Shown one piece after another: positions 25,071 to 40,837 of a stretch of DNA of 64,000 nucleotides. The stretch spans positions 14,570,001-14,634,000 of the forward strand of contig OU015568.1 in assembly GCA_907165135.1 (NCBI GenBank). Reading direction: 5' to 3'. The notes under the pieces were generated by a model. That model saw only the letters and a list, made by a program, of their open reading frames with translations. It was not told where the DNA came from and made no database searches. This DNA comes from Oikopleura dioica (Eukaryota; Animalia; Chordata). The number at the start of each line of letters is the position of its first letter. Position 1 is the stretch's first letter. A program made the translations under genes and the position numbers.

Positions 25071-28000
25071 ATGAGTTTGACGCTAATTCGCTGCAGTAGG
25101 CGATTAATTGTTTCCCGTGGGATGAAAATATACACAAAAACCGGTGACAAAGGTTTGTGACAGCTTCGAGATTTGAATTGCTTTCTAAGCGAATTTTTCA
25201 AGGAACGACATCTTTGTACACTGGTGAAAGACGCCCTAAGGAACAGTTCTCAAATCGGCCTCCCCGGGCTGGTTTCGGCAACCTGCGTGGAAACCTGAGT
25301 CAGGATATTAAATTTGTCTTTTTATCAAAGATCCTTCGGGACCCTCACTCAGATTTCTGCAGGTTGTCGAGCCCAGTCAGGGGCGGGGACGCTCGTCTAA
25401 ATTACCAAAGATTTTTGGTAATGCATTACCAAAAATTGGTAATCCATTACCAAACTTTTTTCATAAGTTCTGATTTTTTGTCCAAAAAATGAGTAAATCA
25501 CTCCCAAACGTTTTCTATCACACAGGCGCGGAGCGCACAAGGGCTCTTTGACTAAACAAAATTGGCACTTTTCGGGAAGTTTGGTAATGCATTACCAAAA
25601 ATTGGTAATGGATTACCAAAATTGGTAATGCATTACCAATTGGTAATTTAGACGAGCGTTTCCCGTCAGGGGAGTGCATCTAGTATTTTGAATTATATAC
25701 TTTTATCCCTTTTTAAAACTGCAGAACAGACGGATCTCGTCTTTGACGCCTTGGGAGCGACAGATGAGCTTTCGGCTGCACTTGGAGTCGCTCGGGAATT
25801 CGCGTACGATCGCCAAATGCAAAATGTTATTACAATAGGTAAAGCCACAATAATCCTCGCTTGATACTGGTTATTACCTGATTAAAGTTGCTCATTTATT
25901 ATTTTTCAGTTGGCGACCTTCAAAGTCGGCTTCAAGAAGTTGGATCGGCCATTGCGACGCCTATTTCGTCAGGTTTGTATTGGACTCGCCTTGACCTGGC
26001 TTTAATTTTTGGATGATCAAATCCAAATCGAGCTGAACCCTTTTCTTAGCCTCGGAAATGAAGCTCAAGCGCGTGAGCTTCGACGAATCAGGAACGGCTC
26101 AATCAGATTTGATACTGAACATCCAGCGGAGTAGGATCAGAGAATAAGCCCGGGAAAAGAAGTAAAGAAGCTTGAAGATCTAATCGACGAACTTGACGCC
26201 CAACTGCCACAGCTTACGACTTTTATTCTTCCCGGAGGAGGAATGCGGCTTTTGAATCAAACCCGATTTTTAAAAGATTTAGGAGAGAGCGTGAATTTTT
26301 CATGTTTCAGTTTTTAAAGGCAATAGGTACTAGCTACTTCATGGATGATTCAAACGCCGTGTCAGGAAAGTGCGCTGCGCATTTGCACATGGCAAGAACT
26401 ATCTGTCGAAGGGCTGAAAGAATGTCTCTGCCGTTGGCAGATAGTGGCGAGTTGGATAGGTACCTGGGTTTCAGAAAAAACGGCACTATGTTTAAGTGAG
26501 CTCCTAAAATGAAGATTTTCTTCTATGTATTCAGTGAAATCAAAGAGGAAATCTTTTTAAATTTTGATCCAAGTTTGACTAATTAAATTTCAAAATTGAA
26601 CGTAACCGGTAACCACTGAAGTTTTATCGGCAATGGCAAAAAATTTGGTAATTGAATTTTTAAAGAACCTCTTCGAAATTGACTCTTTTTTTGTGATGTC
26701 ACATGTCGAGGTGCGGCTTATACATTTTCTCTGCTGCTCGGCGGCTCTTGAATATTCATAGCGTTATTACTCGGCATCTAATAATTCAGCAAGCTTGAAT
26801 TCTTCGACGCTTATTGGATAATCATGCATTTGCAGGCATCGAGCAGAAAAGGATTTTTGACAAAAACTAATTAATTATTAACGTTCTAATGCATTTCACC
26901 GAGCTACAGCTATCTGCATTCTACCAGCAGAGCTCGCGAGTTACAAAACACCTTTTGTCTGCCAAGAAATATCGCTAAAATGTCCGCCGCCACACAAGGT
27001 CAGTTGAAGGAATCGAATTGATTTTTGCCAATTTACTATTTTTCACTTCATTTTTTTTCTTTTTCAAACATGCCAAAACCAGAGATGATCAGAAGATTCT
27101 CTAAGGGCATCATCAAAATATTTTCGCCAACAAACTCCCTTGGTAAATAAAAACTCATCTTATTTTTATTTTCCTAATAGGAAAATTTGTCGTTAAAACT
27201 TATAGATAGCAATAAAGTAGGATTATTTCCTATTCAAGATTCACTTTTTACGAAAAATCTGAGAGAAAACTTTGAAAATTTTCATATTCTTCTTGATGAT
27301 TTTATTCACGAAGATGCATTTTAAGAGAGGTATGAGACTTCTATGAATTGTATTTTTGCGGAGCCACAAAAGATAGTCAATCTGCCTGCTTTTATATACA
27401 CCTTTTGGACCCCGACAAGTTGAACTTGTCAAGTTGGGCGACCATTAGAGGATTTATTTACGACTATTGTGCATCCATGTTTATATTTCCTATATAACTG
27501 CATTCAGCCGCTTTTTGCCATCTAGCGAGCCGGCAACTTAGCCTCCAATAGTCACTTTTAGGAATCGCTTTTTCAGTCATCTACTTTTTATTTTTTCTTG
27601 AAAGAGGGAAAGTTGAAAGATGTTTTTTTCAGCGGCCAGTTTAGGTTAGTTTTTAATTATTTATATACTTGTCACTTGATGGAGGCTTTTGGTCACTATT
27701 GGAAGTGAACTTAGTGTAGGCCAAGTGTCATTTTGTCAATATTTGATGAGATTGGTGAGTTTGTTCCTTGCATTTGCATTAAGCAAAAGCATATGTTTGC
27801 TGGGTATAATCTGGGGCGTTAATGTTTGTTTGAAATGAAAAAATGGGTGTATTTGAATATCTACTTTCCGGAGCGTTATTCCCGCTTTTTTATAATTTTA
27901 ATTATTCGAACTTCCCTGATTTACTGGCAAAAATCGTCATTAAACTTGGCAGGGTCTATAGCTCCTATATTAATAATGGTATGCTATCGTAAATATTGAC

Positions 28001-31000
28001 AGATCGGATTCCTATCCGGATTTTTATCTCTTCTCTAATTCATCATTTCGGCTCTTATATTCCAATTTTTTGAGAAAGAAAACGTACTGAGTTCCCAAAA
28101 TGGGACTCTGTGGCTGTTGCTCCAGTCGAAAAATCCATGGTATGAACTTTTTCTCATAGTTTTTTAGCAACTGAGAAAAGCATTATTAATTCGGGGAGTG
28201 AAAGAAGATTTTGGCATTTTTTCCACTCGAGGACTGATCAATCAATTATCGAATGATTTAGTCCAGGTTCTTTTATTGATAGCAAATAGCAGAATTAATT
28301 TGTAACTGGCTGAAAAGTCTCGCTCAGACTGTAAAAAGGATGGATGAGATTGATTTGAGATGAGATTTTTGTACAGGATGATTCAGTGTTTCCGGGCGAA
28401 AGGTACTGTAATTACTACTTTAAAAACGCTTGTTTAAAAAGAGTCAGAGAAAGTTTTTGATCAGCTGTCATTTTTGCTTCCTTTCGAAAGTATTCATAAA
28501 AGAACGAGAGACGGGGTCACTATGCGGTAATAATTCAAAACGTCACGGGCGGGAAAAGGCGCTTGATCTCACCTGCTCATTAGTTAAATTTATTAGACAT
28601 GTTGGTGCAAACGCTTTAATCAAGCTTTTCCTTCGGATTACTCTCTTTTTCGGCTCTGCATAGAGACTTGAGAGGATTAGACGAAAACTAATTTTCGCCA
28701 GAGATAGCTTCTCAGATCAACGAGGATAGCGAGAGATCTAAAGCTGTCTGCGAGATTTTTTTTAATTTAAAAATTTTAAGAGAAGGGTAAAGCAATATAA
28801 AGGGGCCTCAAGCCTTAGATGATTTAATAGATATTCATTAGATAGTATTTAAAAGGGCTTCTTCCTTCGTTCTCTCACTTCCCAAAAGAAGTGCATTGTA
28901 GCCGAAGTATGAACCAGGGGAGATCCGCAGGAAGTTCCAGGATGAACGAGACCCCCTGTATATATCGGGATCCCCACAAAATTCAGAGCATTTTTATAGT
29001 TTTCTGAGTTTTCTGAAACCCGTTGAATAGAAACGTATGCCGCTATCTTAATCGCCTGTCAGATTTATTGTTCCAGCTCGCCCGTAGCGCCCAACCAGGG
29101 ATGTACATTCGCAGCGCAAAATCCGCAAAACAGCGCAAAATGCGGGATTTTTCATTCTGCAGCGCAAAACAGCGCAAAATCAGCCCCAAAAATTTCCGCA
29201 ATTTTTCCGCAAAATTGCGCGCAAAAGCGCATTTTGCGCGAAAATTGCACAAAATCTCAATAAATTTGCAGTCCGCAAAATGCAATTTTGCGGGATTTTG
29301 CGTAGAATTTCTACATTTTTTTGATGTTCATTGTGAAGATTTCCGAATCAAATCCTCATTCATCATCGCATTCACAACTTCGGCGGTAATTTGCGGAAGA
29401 AAAACTAAATAATCATCCGACATAAAACCGTCCGATATCGTAGTTAACCAACCGGTCATTTTTCGGGCCGTTTCAGCCCCGTTCCTTGATTTCTAAATTT
29501 AAGGGGCTTGACGGCCCTTCGGGCCGTTTCAGCCCCGTTCCTTGATTTCTAAATTTAAGGGGCTTGACGGCCCTTCGGGCCGTTTCAGCCCCGTTCCTTG
29601 ATTTCTAAATTTAAGGGGCTTGACGGCCCTTCGGGCCGTTTCAGCCCCGTTCCTTGATTTCTAAATTTAAGGGCTTGACGGCCCTTCGGGCCGTTTCAGC
29701 CCCGTTCCTTGATTTCTAAATTTAAGGGGCTTGACGGCCCTTCGGGCCGTTTCAGCCCCGTTCCTTGATTTCTAAATTTAAGGGGCTTGACGGCCCTTCG
29801 GGCCGTATCAGCCCCGTTCCTTGATTTCTAAATTTAAGGGGCTTGACGGCCCTTCGGGCCGTTTCAGCCCCGTTCCTTGATTTCTAAATTTAAGGGGCTT
29901 GACGGCCCTTCGGGCCGTTTCAGCCCCGTTCCTTGATTTCTAAATTTAAGGGCTTGACGGCCCTTCGGGCCGTTTCAGCCCCGTTCCTTGATTTCTAAAT
30001 TTAAGGGGCTTGACGGCCCTTCGGGCCGTTTCAGCCCCGTTCCTTGATTTCTAAATTTAAGGGGCTTGACGGCCCTTCGGGCCGTTTCAGCCCCGTTCCT
30101 TGATTTCTAAATTTAAGGGGCTTGACGGCCCTTCGGGCCGTTTCAGCCCCGTTCCTTGATTTCTAAATTTAAGGGGCTTGACGGCCCTTCGGGCCGTTTC
30201 AGCCCCGTTCCTTGATTTCTAAATTTAAGGGGCTTGACGGCCCTTCGGGCCGTTTCAGCCCCGTTCCTTGATTTCTAAATTTAAGGGGCTTGACGGCCCT
30301 TCGGGCCGTTTCAGCCCCGTTCCTTGATTTCTAAATTTAAGGGGCTTGACGGCCCTTCGGGCCGTTTCAGCCCCGTTCCTTGATTTCTAAATTTAAGGGG
30401 CTTGACGGCCCTTCGGGCCGTTTCAGCCCCGTTCCTTGATTTCTAAATTTAAGGGGCTTGACGGCCCTTCGGGCCGTTTCAGCCCCGTTCCTTGATTTCT
30501 AAATTTAAGGGGCTTGACGGCCCTTCGGGCCGTTTCAGCCCCGTTCCTTGATTTCTAAATTTAAGGGGCTTGACGGCCCTTCGGGCCGTTTCAGCCCCGT
30601 TCCTTGATTTCTAAATTTAAGGGCTTGACGGCCCTTCGGGCCGTTTCAGCCCCGTTCCTTGATTTCTAAATTTAAGGGGCTTGACGGCCCTTCGGGCCGT
30701 TTCAGCCCCGTTCCTTGATTTCTAAATTTAAGGGGCTTGACGGCCCTTCGGGCCGTTTCAGCCCCGTTCCTTGATTTCTAAATTTAAGGGGCTTGACGGC
30801 CCTTCGGGCCGTTTCAGCCCCGTTCCTTGATTTCTAAATTTAAGGGGCTTGACGGCCCTTCGGGCCGTTTCAGCCCCGTTCCTTGATTTCTAAATTTAAG
30901 GGGCTTGACAAAGGCTTGGAACTCTGAGTTGATAAATCTCAGTTCTGTCCCCAACCCCACCCACACCCATCATTTAAAAAATCTATATTATCATTGTTTT

Positions 31001-31479
31001 TTGCTTAATTATGGTTATTTTTGAAAACCTTGAAAATAACTTATTATAACTTCGGAATAATGTCCCCAAAATTTTATCTCTCCATTTTAAGTAGAAATAA
31101 ATGGGGCCAAAAATACCACAAAATTCGCAGATTTTCGCAAAATGCGCGAAAATCCCGCAAAATATGCAAATTTTCGCAAAATCCGCGAAAATCCCGCAAA
31201 ATCGCAAAATTACGCAAATTGCGTGTCATCTGCGCAATCCGCAATTCCGCAAAAGCGCGAAATCCGCAAAATTTTCGCAAAATCAACAAATTTTGATTTT
31301 CCGCAAAACAGCGCAAAATTCCGCAAATTGCGCGATTTTTGGATTTCGCAGCGCAAAACAGCGCAAAATGGACCCCAAAAATTTCCGCAATCGCAGCGCA
31401 GCGCAAAGCAAAAATTTGTGCGAATGTACATCCCTGCGCCCAACAACAAGAAGGCAAAACCGATCAGTTCAAATCGTGA
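25071..31479 (+). CDS. MMAB: Cob(I)alamin adenosyltransferase (cblB type); last exon interrupted by a transposon
   Basis: MSLTLIRCSRRLIVSRG (mitochondrial-presequence-like) then MKIYTKTGDKG|TTSLYTGERRPK|TDLVFDALGATDELS, LQEVGSAIATP, FILPGG, HMARTICRRAER and NVCRYLNRLSDLLFQLAR. The empty-site C-terminus SAQQQEGKTDQFKS* ends at 31479. Confidence 0.92.
25262..25383. mobile_element. Older degenerate inverted-repeat element in an MMAB intron; host of a nested insertion
   Basis: CCCCGGGCTGGTTTCGGCAACCTGCGTGGAAACCTGAGT pairs imperfectly with ACTCAGATTTCTGCAGGTTGTCGAGCCCAGTCAGGGG. Confidence 0.55.
25384..25664. mobile_element. 281-bp MITE with 8-bp TSD and palindromic subterminal repeats
   Basis: TSD GTCAGGGG at 25376-25383 and 25665-25672. 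TIR core ACGCTCGTCTAAATTACCAA / TTGGTAATTTAGACGAGCGT. Several copies of the palindrome TTGGTAATGCATTACCAA and variants. Confidence 0.8.
29096..31436. mobile_element. Non-autonomous hAT-type DNA transposon (2341 bp) inserted in the last coding exon of MMAB
   Basis: 18-bp perfect TIR CAGGGATGTACATTCGCA / TGCGAATGTACATCCCTG. 8-bp TSD CGCCCAAC at 29088-29095 and 31437-31444. CGCAAAA-rich subterminal arrays at both ends; no transposase ORF. Confidence 0.93.
29462..30909. repeat. 56-bp tandem minisatellite, about 26 near-identical copies, inside the hAT element
   Basis: Unit TTCGGGCCGTTTCAGCCCCGTTCCTTGATTTCTAAATTTAAGGGGCTTGACGGCCC starts at 29462, 29518, 29574 and so on. A few units have GGG instead of GGGG; one T>A variant near 29806. 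There are no variable spacers, so this is not CRISPR. Confidence 0.97.
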
Positions 31480-35452: not shown

Positions 35453-36180
35453 TCATTTAGTTTTTTCAATTTTTCCATAATTGATTCACTTTTAATTTGA
35501 TTCCAAATCCCAAATGCACTCAACGACGAAGAAAACACAGTGTGAACACAACAAGAAACGCGATCCGCAAGAAATTATCAAAAACAAAGATGATCCGCAC
35601 TCATTGCTTAATTAAGGCAAATTAACCATGATTGACCTCCTATGTGCATAACGATATTCGTGTGTTATTCCTGAAAGCACAACTTTGCATTTCCTGATTT
35701 TATTCTTTCATTTTCATTATATAATTTAAATTATGCAATTTCAGTATTTTTGTTTTGCTGTATATTCTCATCTATGATTTCTCCTTCCCTCATTAATGTT
35801 CCCTTATAAATTTTCATATATTTAAACTGGGAATGAGTAACTAAAGCAAAACGCCTGTATATGAGCACAAGATGAACCCCTTTTTATACGAAAAACTTTC
35901 CGGATACGACCTTAATTTTGATAATTATTAATTATTGCAAGAGTCATCAAAGTTCAATTCAACCCCTATCACTCAAAAACAAAGACCAAACTCGCTACTC
36001 TTATCCAGTCAAAATACGAATCTTCAAACAAACAAAAACACTACTGATCTTTACCACTCTAACTCTAAATCTCAGCTCCTTAAACGTTCATTGTACTGTA
36101 CTATTTTGTTGTCCGAGTCATTCCTTCAATTTTATTACTTTTCATTCTCATGCAGCGCTTTCTCCTGAAGCCAATAAAAT

Positions 36181-39100
36181 TTACAAAAATTCACGTTTCT
36201 TTTTCACTTGTTTCGTTTTTCGGCGAGGGATCAATGATTTCGCCGTCGATTTTTCGTTGTTGGGTAAAGTTGGTAATTGGGTAGTGAGGGTCAACGGTGA
36301 TATTGAGGTAGAAAGTGTTGAATTGTTTTGAGAGAACTTTGTATGTTAAGTCCTTAATTGTAAAGTTAGGTTTCTAGTCTACTCCTGGTACTTACAGAGA
36401 GTCCATCATGATGTTGACGTTTTCCAGCATACTGTAGTAATGAATTTCTCAGAGGATTTTTCTCATTGCCTTCGTCCTCTCCATGCTTGATCATTCTATA
36501 TTTTGAGATTTCATCAAACGGTCTGATGATAGTATATCCTTCCCCTTTCAGCCTAACTTGCAAGTCGTCGTCTTCTCCTCCCCAACCCCAGTATTCGTTG
36601 CTGTATCCGTTTAGTTTTTCGAATGTTTCTTTTGTAAAACTCACTAAAAGTAAGATTCCGCTTTTGTAAAGATTTTAACGAGGTACCTATTCCTCCAAAG
36701 ACATTTTGATAGAGCGGCTTGTAGTTCCAAATGTCAATGTGCGCGGCGTAGTGGCGAGGATAGCGGGAGCAGAGATAGAGATTCCGATCGTCTTCCATCA
36801 CGAGATCGACGTCGTGGAAAAAGAAGCAATCAAAGCCGTCGTTGACTGCTTCTTTGAAACCGATATTGAGGAGTTTTCCCCGATTGAAGGGTCGAAATCT
36901 TCCACCTTATTCTGGGTGATCTTTTCTGCGTATAAAAATGTTTTTCATAAAAGAGCACCGTTCCTTGATTAATGATATAAAATCGAAAATGAATATTCTG
37001 CCGTATAAGCGCTGGTATCATATAAAGAAGGAGCCATTTTAAATGTTTCGTCCTTTCGTTCGTTTTCGAGTTATCTCTGAATGGGACAGGGCGGTCTAAT
37101 TTGCATTCTTGTAAATAATCTCGAAAATTTGCGAGATTAATCTTCTTTGGAAAAAGATTCTGAGATTAGTCAAGACTGGACTAGTTTCGAGATTAATCTT
37201 TTTAGCGAGGGTCGCGTGGCTCGGGGGAAAAATTTGGGTGGCGCTGGCGAGCTGTGAGCAGTGCGAGGCGGCGCGGACAAAATTTCAAGCTGCGCTACAA
37301 GCATGTTTGAGTTTCATTTTTCTCTCGCGCCGTCGGCCATTGGTCCACCAATCACAGCGCGCGTTTCAAGATTATTTGAAATAATCTCGATACTATTTCG
37401 AAAATTTCCCGAATTAATCTTTTTTATTCAAACAGACTAATCTCGCGTCGAGATTAATCTTATAAGAATAAATGAATAGTCTTCGGAAAAAAGACTATTT
37501 ACAAGAATGCAAATTAGACCGCCCTGGAATGGGATGATAATGGCCACATGCTTGTTTTTTGGGACCAAACATCGTTCTTTCGGAAAATAGCTCGAACTGA
37601 TGAATTTTGAAGAATATTCGTTCGTGAAGTTTTTGAAGCTTTCTTCCAGCAAATATGTCGGAAATTGCACATCGAAGCGACCTTTTTTCAAGTCATAAAA
37701 TTTTCAGATTGGGATGGGAGTCGAAGGACTCTTGTGGTATGTGAAGCAAAATGCGGAGGAATTTTGCACGCGCGCTCGTCTGAACAATTATTTACCGAGC
37801 AAAAGAGGGCCGGACGGAAAAGTGAGAGTCGTTGTTGATGGCAACAATTTTGCGTATGAGGTTTTGCGGCAATCCAGAGCTCCAGGTACCGCTTGGGCTT
37901 TTGTTATTTAAAATCAATTTGAATAAGCCTGCTTTGGAAGTGAACCGGCTGTTTATGAACACATAATTCATCACAGATTCCTCAAATATCACCTAAAATG
38001 TTGCGACGAGATCATTTTCGTGATGGGCTATTCGAGTGCTCCAGGTAGCGATTGCTGGACAAAGAAAAGGGCGAATGAGCACGAAAGCGCTATGAAATTT
38101 TTCGAACGACTTCGTAATGGAGAACTTCCTCATAGTCAGGGAAATATTGGAAATGATGGTCACAGGAGATACGATAACTTGAAGGTGTCCCCGCCGTGGA
38201 TTGTTCATCAAATCATGGAAATAGTTGAGAAGGACCCAAGAGTGCAGGTTTATCAAGCTGAGTGTGACAAAGACTTTGCGATCATGGATTTGGCAGTGGA
38301 TCTTGGGTGTCCGATTATGAGCAATGACTCGGATTTTCTACTTTTTGCGGCGCAGGAAATGGTTTTTTTCGCAACTAAAGCAAATAAAATTTCCGATTTC
38401 TCGCTTCTGATTGGCAATTAGCGCCCTATCATAGGGCCCCTATGAGAATTTTAAAAACCTTATCAGCCCGTTATCAAAATGGGCGATTGGCGAGGAGCAG
38501 CTGACATTATCAGCGATTATTGGTACAGTTCACAAGATGTCAAGCTTCAGTTCTATCACCTGCCTCTTGTATCGGTTCTTTGCTTCAACAGAGAATGTGA
38601 AATCACAGAAGAAGAGCTTAGACCCTTCTGGTACGCGTTGATCGGAAAAGCGGAATTTGAGCATTCGAAGAAACCGAATGTAATTCCCGAGGTGATCAGA
38701 TGGATTGTCCAGACTTTTGAAGAAGAAGGAAAGTTAAAAAAATATTTTAATAATCTTTGTAAACAAAAGATTTTTCAACTAAAACAGATTTTATGAGCTC
38801 GATCGAAGAAATCTGTGAAATACTCGACGAAATGGCGCTGATGTCAGATGAGTTGAAAAACCACGATGGAGCGTATTTTGGAGCGAATAAAGGCCGGGAA
38901 TCAAGGAAGAGAAGACTCGTCAGAAGCCTCCAGCGATTCATGGTTACCGGAAAGACCTATCCTTGGGAAAACGATGAGTATTTCAAATTGATGCAAAAAA
39001 GCACGCGTGTCGTCACTGATGGCCATCCACTTCTGCGCGCTGCGAGAGATACAGAAGCTTTTTCGATACTGCCGAGTAAGGTGAAAGAAGTTCTGTCTGC

Positions 39101-40505
39101 GAATCGACAAAAAATGCTCTGCTCCTCACTGCCTGCTCCAATTTTTACAGAGCCGATCTTCCAACTCTACAATTCTTGCCATCCTGCTACTGCCGATGAT
39201 TACGATGCGCATAAAACAACAATGAATTATCATTACGAACGGGAGGATCTTCCTGTAGTCTCGAACCTGCTTCTGAGCTATCTACGCAGGGAACTCGTGA
39301 TCCTCGGTCTCGATGATGCTAAATATGCTCGATTCAAGCCAAAAATGCCCGTAGAATCAAGTTACGCAAAAGACGAAGAGTTCAATTTTCTCAATGGAGA
39401 AAAAGTCCCTACTCTTGACGTTCTCTTCAAAGCTTCAAGAGATCAAAAAGTTCGAGCATTTCTGGCCCTTTTTGACTCCGAGATACTAACCTACATCAAC
39501 AAGGATTTCGACAAAATGCCTCCTTTCTGGGGCGTGTTTTTGGCCAGCCTGCGCTATCTCTGGGTCAATGCAGGTCTCAAGGAATGGGAACTGAATGCTT
39601 TCGTAGCGCAGTTTGCTCTTTGCGGACTTTTCACGGCGGCGGACAAGAATTTTTATCGGCTAAAGTGGCTTTTTGTCGGAGGGGATGGAGACTACCAATT
39701 CGACCTTCCTGCGTGCGAGCGAAGCATTACCCTTGCTAACCAGTTTGTTGCGGTGTATTATGCAGTCATGCGAGCTCAGGCAATAACAGGCACTCCTTTC
39801 TATTCTACGACCGAAGTGAAGCCGAATTTATTGGACATTTTTTCCGGTTCTCTTTTTGCCCTCCTCTACAACATGTTCAAGGAAGATCCTCGAATCTCTG
39901 AAGACAAAATGAATCTGCTAAAAAGAATCACTGATGATCAATGGTTTGGAATGCAAGACGAAGAAAATGCAGGCTCAGACCAAGTTTTCGAATGCTACAA
40001 AAATGCTGTTGAAAATTATTTCAACGTTATCGACTTTTATATTTCCCCAATGCGAAATTTCGACCACCGGGTTGCCAAAAAAGGGCTTCAGATGGCGCTG
40101 GAGGAAAATGCTTTTTGATTGATTTCAAGCCAAGGTATAAAAATCACTGGTAGGGTTAGGCTTCAAAAATTAAAATTATTAAATGATTTAGCTAAAACAC
40201 ACGACCCTCAAAGTTTCTTTTCTGACTTTTTCCTTGAAGATCTCTCGGCGCACAAAAACAAGTCGTGGCATTGGATAAAAACGGCTAACGGAAGATTGAA
40301 AATTTAAAACTATTGAAACTTCTGTACATAATTCAAAATCTTCAACCCTATCATCACAGCCAGGCTTCACATGATTCCCATCTCTCTCATAAATCTTCAT
40401 CAACTCGACGTAGCTCTTACTGTAAGAGAAAATGTACAGCAGACAGATACTTGTTGATGCCACCGATAAAATAAAAAAATTTTGGAAAAACTTTGGCGAC
40501 TTCAT
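36181..40505 (-). CDS. B4GALT: Beta-1,4-galactosyltransferase family (GT7) type II membrane protein; exon interrupted by a hAT MITE; first exon (40505-~40325) tentative
   Basis: KHVAIIIPF(R)D, FYIINQ|GGRFRPFNRGKLLNIGF, FHDVDL, FGG, NGYSNEYWGWGGEDDDL, YRMIKH, DGLS|DLTYKV; stop at 36183-36181. The exon beginning near 37685 has no ATG. ORF 40505 (MKSPKFFQNFFILSVASTSICLLYIF) would supply the missing signal-anchor. Confidence 0.85.
37087..37526. mobile_element. 440-bp hAT-type MITE inserted in the B4GALT coding exon
   Basis: ~31-bp TIR CAGGGCGGTCTAATTTGCATTCTTGTAAATA at both ends. 8-bp TSD GAATGGGA at 37079-37086 and 37527-37534. Multiple AGATTAATCT subterminal palindromes. Confidence 0.95.
37714..40118 (+). 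CDS. ASTE1: Asteroid/ASTE1-like XPG-type PIN-domain protein (multi-exon)
   Basis: MGVEGL, VVVDGNN, QAECDKDFAIMDLAVDLGCPIMSNDSDFLLF and LPLVSVLC resemble the ASTE1/FAM120 PIN domain. Long C-terminal exon 38793-40118. FAM120 is not excluded. Confidence 0.7.
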
Positions 40506-40837
40506 TTTTTCAATTTTATTTTTGAAAATTTGATTGACAGTGGCTCATTTCTCGCAATATTCAATGACTTTTAATTCACCGCACATTTTGGGTCTCAACG
40601 AGTCAAAACAAATAGTTTAAATGTCAAAAGAGAACAAAAATTTTATTATTTAATAAATTTTAATAAATAAAGAATTATTATGTTTGAAGAAACAATAACT
40701 TGTTAATACTCCTTCAAAAATTCTCGTATTATTTTTGCTCGTAATAAATAGTCTCTTTATTAAAATTTTGAACTTGAAGAGATATTGCAAATGTACACGT
40801 GTTTCCGTTTTGATTGATTTCTATGAGAATTCTTTTT

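Follow-up and report, generated by a model that had tools for sequence, protein, structure and literature searches.

A young, polymorphic hAT-like MITE in the PFR exon of an Oikopleura dioica B4GALT gene: probably an insertional allele with little or no function

The window analysed here, i.e. the whole stretch of 64,000 nucleotides of Oikopleura dioica DNA, contains a minus-strand gene of the B4GALT1-6 type, whose VAIIIPF/RDN exon is split by a hAT-like MITE. The insertion is derived, young and still polymorphic, the filled allele being the assembled haplotype, and the gene is otherwise intact. We consider it probable that this is a recent, polymorphic insertion of a low-copy element into an exon of a functional B4GALT gene, and that it has created a null or strongly hypomorphic allele. 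As it stands, the MITE represents an ordinary insertional allele, whose empty site is documented in nature.

The identity of the host gene was established by Pfam searches, in which the GT7 matches cover three exon pieces (Glyco_transf_7N with E-values of 6e-7 and 8e-17, Glyco_transf_7C with 4e-20), while the best relative of solved structure is B4GALT1 (E-value 7.5e-16), with B4GALT7 far weaker. The gene holds the GT7 motifs PFR, FNR, DVD and WGWGGEDDD. On the minus strand the flanks of the MITE read ...KNKHVAIIIPF and RDNSKTNERTKHLKWLLLYMIP, and these flanks, together with the Pfam matches, bear out the placement of the element in conserved B4GALT coding sequence made by an earlier, sequence-only reading of this DNA. 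The gene model, in the direction of transcription, is as follows (slashes mark splice or insertion boundaries here and below):

40226-40505 (5' limit 40505, other limit about 40226), minus strand: probable first exon with a type II signal anchor (MKSPKFFQNFFILSVASTSICLLYIF...), covered by reads from a diverged lineage
37527-37681, minus strand: upstream half of the interrupted exon, ...FPKERCLVPKNKHVAIIIPF, with its 5' end probably at the AG of 37683-37682
36964-37078, minus strand: downstream half of the interrupted exon, RDNSKTNERTKHLKWLLLYMIPALIRQNIHFRFYIINQ, from ORF reading and Pfam
36963-36906, minus strand: GA-AG intron of 58 nt, AAG/GAACGG...AATAAG/G, with position and AG/GAA context kept in two other lineages
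36687-36905, minus strand: exon with FNRGKLLNIGF and FHDVDL, from Pfam and motifs
36686-36644, minus strand: GT-AG intron of 43 nt, from gene-model reading
36396-36643, minus strand: exon with YWGWGGEDDD, from Pfam and motifs
36395-36353, minus strand: GTAAGT..AG intron of 43 nt, from gene-model reading
36191-36352, minus strand: last coding exon, with the stop codon at 36193-36191, from gene-model reading

Once the MITE and one copy of its TSD are removed, the frame stays open for 299 codons, beginning in the interrupted exon, crossing three introns and ending with the stop at 36193. Introns as short as these (about 43–58 nt), the GA-AG intron, the gene density and the marine plankton sources of the matching sequences fit an appendicularian of the Oikopleura type. 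The position of the GA-AG intron (36906-36963) is kept in a metagenomic contig with 95.8% identity and in a lineage with 70–72% identity, its interior being diverged, and the donor reads AAG/GAA in all three lineages. The probable exon 1 was set about 2.5 kb from the interrupted exon, with a gene on the opposite strand between them; it contains no clean GT donor of phase 1, the phase needed by the AG at 37683-37682. Reads from the diverged lineage end near 40334 and 40225, by this exon. The opposite-strand gene (37714-40118, plus strand) lies wholly within the B4GALT first intron of about 2.5 kb, and no more than about 30 nt separate its start from the B4GALT exon. The peptides ...VVVDGNNFAYE... 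and ...IMSNDSDFLLF... occur in its ORFs, and Pfam searches with two of its ORF pieces returned no match. Among the contigs of the DNA run X1, obtained under the same species label, one form lacks 88 nt of this gene, or has other sequence in their place, between two of its ORFs (38369-38458).

The inserted element and its immediate surroundings comprise the following features:

37079-37086, no strand assigned: TSD copy 1, GAATGGGA (TCCCATTC on the gene strand), a direct repeat
37087-37526, no strand assigned: 440-bp non-autonomous TIR element, hAT-like MITE, from repeat and ORF analysis
37087-37121, plus strand: left TIR, first letters CAGGGCGGTCTAATTTGC, one arm of an inverted-repeat pair of 35 nt with 97% complementarity
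37492-37526, minus strand: right TIR, the other arm of the same 35-nt, 97% complementary pair
37527-37534, no strand assigned: TSD copy 2, GAATGGGA, exact 8-bp direct repeat
37437-37439, minus strand: first in-frame stop of the unspliced filled allele, from translation, followed by AATAAA at 37428-37423

The 440-bp hAT-like MITE recognized in the earlier reading has 35-nt TIRs and an exact 8-bp TSD on both sides, of which one copy is present in empty alleles. The TIRs open with CAGGGCGG, which fits the hAT criterion of a CAG or TAG start, and the combination of an 8-bp TSD with a CAGGG terminus fits a non-autonomous hAT element; the start of the TIR presumably resembles that of Ac (CAGGGATGAAA), with the terminal CAGGG as in Ac. 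The arms of the MITE are AT-rich, with subterminal repeats of the AGATTAATCT type, the core is GC-rich (55–60%), and the longest ORF within the element has 59 aa. The GC-rich core also carries two inverted CCAAT boxes (ATTGGTGGACCAAT) at 37352 and 37343 (37343-37356), a promoter-like motif. An Rfam search with the MITE gave no meaningful match.

Within the 64-kb window the MITE is single: its 22-nt TIR end occurs at two sites, namely both ends of the element (0 expected by chance), and BLAST with the whole element matched only the element itself. As to a possible autonomous hAT partner, the 2.3-kb CAGGGATG element at 29096-31436 has other ends and lacks a long ORF. A scan of JGI metagenomes with the TIR gave 0 matches, and a scan with the target-site pattern gave 4, all unrelated and attributable to chance. 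In the X1 run, on the other hand, the contig corresponding to the core of the MITE has a depth of about 1818, single-copy DNA being at about 190; it shows 3 differences per 398 nt, and foreign flanks are attached as loose ends on both of its edges. The roughly tenfold depth, the few differences and the other flanks point to about 10 near-identical copies of a young, low-copy family that was active recently. A variant of the MITE with a 69-nt internal deletion (37144-37214), with TTTA instead, is also present among the X1 contigs.

The empty site had been predicted from the assembled sequence, and its exact letters were found in nature; the uninterrupted exon occurs in three independent sources. 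In X1, a contig runs from 37078 straight on to 37527 and leaves out 448 nt, 8 letters being ambiguous because they can be placed on either side; the depth of the contig is 92 vs about 130–200 in the flanking single-copy DNA. A further X1 contig, from the flank, has its end precisely at 37086, and the junction contig starts 30 nt ahead of the edge of the MITE; a filled and an empty allele that form a bubble in the assembly graph would give this arrangement. The TARA Oceans metagenome contig L002, 95.8% identical on both sides, gives two alignments that have the 8-bp target in common; its sequence is ...ATCATCCCATTCAGAGATAAC..., with the translation HVAIIIPFRDNSKTNERTKHL / KHVAIIIPFRDNSKTNERTKHL. 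The contig L004, which comes from a diverged lineage (70–72% identity), is contiguous at this point and encodes IIPFRD. The presence of the empty site in three sources indicates that the insertion is derived and polymorphic.

What would the filled allele produce? Unspliced, it reads IIPFQGGLICILVNSLFSEDYSFILIRLISTRD and encounters a stop at 37439-37437, 29 codons into the MITE, which agrees with the read-through stop expected earlier near 37437; a protein search with the read-through ORF found no relative. The filled allele would be expected to give mostly truncated, degraded or mis-spliced transcripts and hence to be null or strongly hypomorphic. Heterozygosity or rarity of the allele, together with the existence of paralogues, would explain why it is tolerated. 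Any molecules spliced at G..AG pairs near the ends of the MITE would have Gln or Gln-Gly at the place where the PFR motif has its near-invariant Arg, and such R to Q or R to QG proteins would probably still be impaired. An intact empty allele segregates alongside the filled one, so that the latter could be present in the assembly even if splicing never rescued it. Against the null-allele reading count the use of G-initial non-GT donors in this genome, including a GA-AG intron in the very same gene, the C/T-rich tract with a CAG/AG acceptor at the insertion site, and the second exonic element 6 kb away.

These observations bear on the alternative in which the MITE is a nascent transposon-derived intron, i.e. 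the spliceosome would excise the MITE with one TSD length at a GG-AG, GC-AG or GT-AG pair (the latter 37519-37075), and the allele would be nearly neutral. From the sequence features discussed below we judge this unlikely. A more specific version, which we regard as slightly more doubtful still, is that the filled allele may be spliced in frame from a G donor borne by the TIR to the AG after the TSD, being a polymorphic intron at birth and part of a genome-wide seeding of G..AG introns by CAGGG-ended hAT elements under a relaxed 5' splice-site rule. Three in-frame pairs are indeed present. The two 448-nt removals put forward in the sequence-only reading, GG-AG (37524-37077) and GC-AG (37522-37075), exist, are in frame and both give IIPFQDNSK, with R changed to Q; a third candidate, a 445-nt GT-AG intron (37519-37075) absent from that reading, is also in frame and gives IIPFQGDNSK. 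The predicted spliced junctions are TTCCAAGATAAC (GG-AG), TTCCAGGATAAC (GC-AG) and TTCCAGGGCGATAAC (GT-AG, 445 nt), as against TTCAGAGATAAC for the junction of the empty allele. The TIR end and the TSD together build a C/T-rich tract before CAG/AG, which makes a plausible acceptor. This genome makes use of G-initial non-GT donors (the GA-AG intron; PMC7072748; PMC8008620). For Oikopleura, the gain of introns from transposons has been proposed (PMC3443670, Table 1), and MITE-derived introns are established in Fritillaria (PMC11282704, citing Henriet 2019; PMC13326754). Because the compact genome of O. dioica also tolerates G-initial non-GT donors, splicing-out is more conceivable here than in most animals. 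Finally, another exon is hit by an insertion within the same window: the second exonic element reported earlier, in MMAB, was found again as an element with TIRs and TSD about 6 kb away.

However, the exact-length, frame-preserving geometry that had been considered suggestive, although present, is at the level of chance. For an element starting with CAGGGCGGTC, an exact-length G..AG option requires no more than an AG at any of a few distances downstream of the TSD, which is expected at 15–26% of random sites: at 15–17% when up to 4 bases of the element may stay behind, and at 23–26% when up to 7 may. Such an option is moreover one of 94 stop-free in-frame G..AG pairs around the MITE (any G-initial donor, any AG). 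Weight matrices derived from the inferred introns of the window were too noisy, and the candidate donors were judged by direct comparison with the conserved GA-AG intron; CA/GGGCGG and GG/GCGGTC are without the AG/G context of that intron. The only donor with AG/G, at 37523, would shift the frame, its introns to the acceptors at 37077 and 37075 being 447 and 449 nt long; the GTAAAT at 37502, a donor close to the consensus, is likewise out of frame with these acceptors. Both donors would compete with the in-frame pairs. In the predicted RNA fold (MFE −165.5 kcal/mol, z −11.5) the TIRs pair with each other over about 37 bp, forming a terminal stem that includes every candidate donor and the stretch upstream of the acceptor. 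Neither G nor AG occurs in the TSD, and the sequence of the empty site is not restored by any G..AG pair, the nearest ones giving R to Q or R to QG. The residue lost is nearly invariant, with R in 34 of the 35 homologues that have this region, K in one and Q in none. Its probable counterpart in the UDP-Gal pocket of bovine B4GALT1 is Arg189; no paper giving the PFR arginine as a UDP-binding residue was found in the open literature. The young age of the insertion and the co-occurrence of an empty allele are also what would be seen for any new deleterious insertion. Taken together, the sequence arguments for splicing-out of the MITE appear weak.

Transcript data under the same species label come from other lineages. 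Oligo-dT RNA runs X16–X18, aligned to 36000-40800, gave 28–54 reads each, with 90–99% identity; they lie only partly on this stretch, mostly on the WGWGGEDDD motif, none of them crosses the MITE junctions, and the runs derive from a diverged lineage. In the whole set X16–X36, the words sampled from 36000-40800 were absent, or 90–99% matches occurred at the most conserved stretches only, and none of the listed RNA runs searched contains the locus; the plankton metatranscriptome X8 contains 11% of the sampled words. A loose end at 37054 leads into mRNA of the diverged lineage in which PFRD is contiguous, which indicates that this lineage transcribes its B4GALT orthologue. Protein searches for transcript-derived orthologues in a representative set returned exon-sized fragments only, and a search with the last large exon returned genomic contigs only, with no transcript-derived orthologue of the present lineage. 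Judging from these sequence comparisons, the species label evidently spans lineages too diverged for testing alleles of this genome, and the RNA runs that carry it cannot test the filled allele.

The transcription of the orthologue is relevant to another alternative, in which this B4GALT copy was already dispensable or a pseudogene, so that the insertion would be neutral, spliced or not. Several paralogues with the WGWGGEDDD region exist, other X1 contigs and the X16–X18 reads lying on that motif only; the motif is PFRDN here vs the usual PFRNR; and the connection from exon 1 to the interrupted exon lacks a clean GT donor of the needed phase. A gene decaying before the insertion is nevertheless improbable, given that the empty allele retains its 299 uninterrupted codons with all GT7 motifs, that exons are conserved and introns diverged between lineages of 70–72% identity, and that the orthologue is transcribed in the diverged lineage. 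An assembly artefact or a somatic insertion with no germline allele, to which one might resort because a single assembled haplotype was read and no filled-junction contig is explicitly present among the X1 contigs, is hardly credible in view of the exact 8-bp TSD and intact TIRs, which are the signature of transposition, and of the X1 contig ends, which are as expected of two alleles in the graph.

A recent insertional allele in a functional gene, the reading preferred here, has close parallels among polymorphic MITE or DNA-transposon alleles of exons (e.g. those of Ac/Ds-type hAT elements): the element is short and non-coding, has near-identical copies elsewhere, shows presence/absence polymorphism and introduces a premature stop. 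There is no essential difference from ordinary exonic insertion alleles, except that the host is a very compact genome that tolerates G-initial non-GT donors. Introner elements, the subject of reported work by Huff et al. (2016), offer a second comparison. Like the introners of Micromonas, Aureococcus and others (Gozashti et al. 2022; PMC9860276), the MITE is a TIR and TSD element within a gene, with one conceivable splice site in its end and the other beside the duplicated target. Introners, however, are represented by many copies that are demonstrably spliced, at sites that restore the coding sequence, whereas the MITE described here has no scarless option, and its best in-frame options would change a near-invariant residue.

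Within the appendicularians, the MITE introns of Fritillaria borealis (Henriet et al. 2019 via PMC11282704; PMC13326754) are similar in having TIRs and TSDs, but they mostly have AG-AC or AG-AT ends and depend on a modified U2AF and spliceosome, whereas the B4GALT introns in the window are GT-AG and GA-AG; no Fritillaria-type intron ends that would allow scarless removal of the MITE exist at this site. Non-canonical introns amount to 11–12% in O. dioica (PMC8008620), and the candidates resemble the GA-AG, GC-AG and GG-AG introns of this species (PMC7072748; PMC8008620) in that they begin with G and end with AG. In the published GA donors, on the other hand, the site is preceded by a conserved AG and followed by an A (PMC7072748). 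The GA-AG intron of B4GALT conforms to this pattern, and the candidates CA/GGG and GG/GCG differ from it.

If carriers do splice the MITE out, the case would document for an animal the gain of an intron that is dated and polymorphic, and the relaxed donor rule of Oikopleura would be tied to the tolerance of transposons, as has been argued for Fritillaria; it would be a new, well-dated case of an already known process rather than a new kind of process. Any genome-wide claim of splice-ready geometry must exceed the 15–26% chance expectation. The practical outcome of the analysis is the set of three diagnostic junction strings, TTCCAAGATAAC, TTCCAGGATAAC and TTCCAGGGCGATAAC.

Two other repeats in the window deserve mention. 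The 2.3-kb TIR element at 29096-31436 (29088-31444 with the TSD) has the ends CAGGGATGTACATTCGCA and the 8-bp TSD CGCCCAAC, and lies within the ...LFQLARSAQ/QQEGK... end of a plus-strand coding exon (MMAB); it is full of CGCAAAA-type repeats. The region 25389-25659 consists of dense inverted and direct repeats built on TTGGTAATGCATTACCAA and is bounded by perfect inverted repeats of 20 nt (ACGCTCGTCTAAATTACCAA); this nest is probably another MITE.
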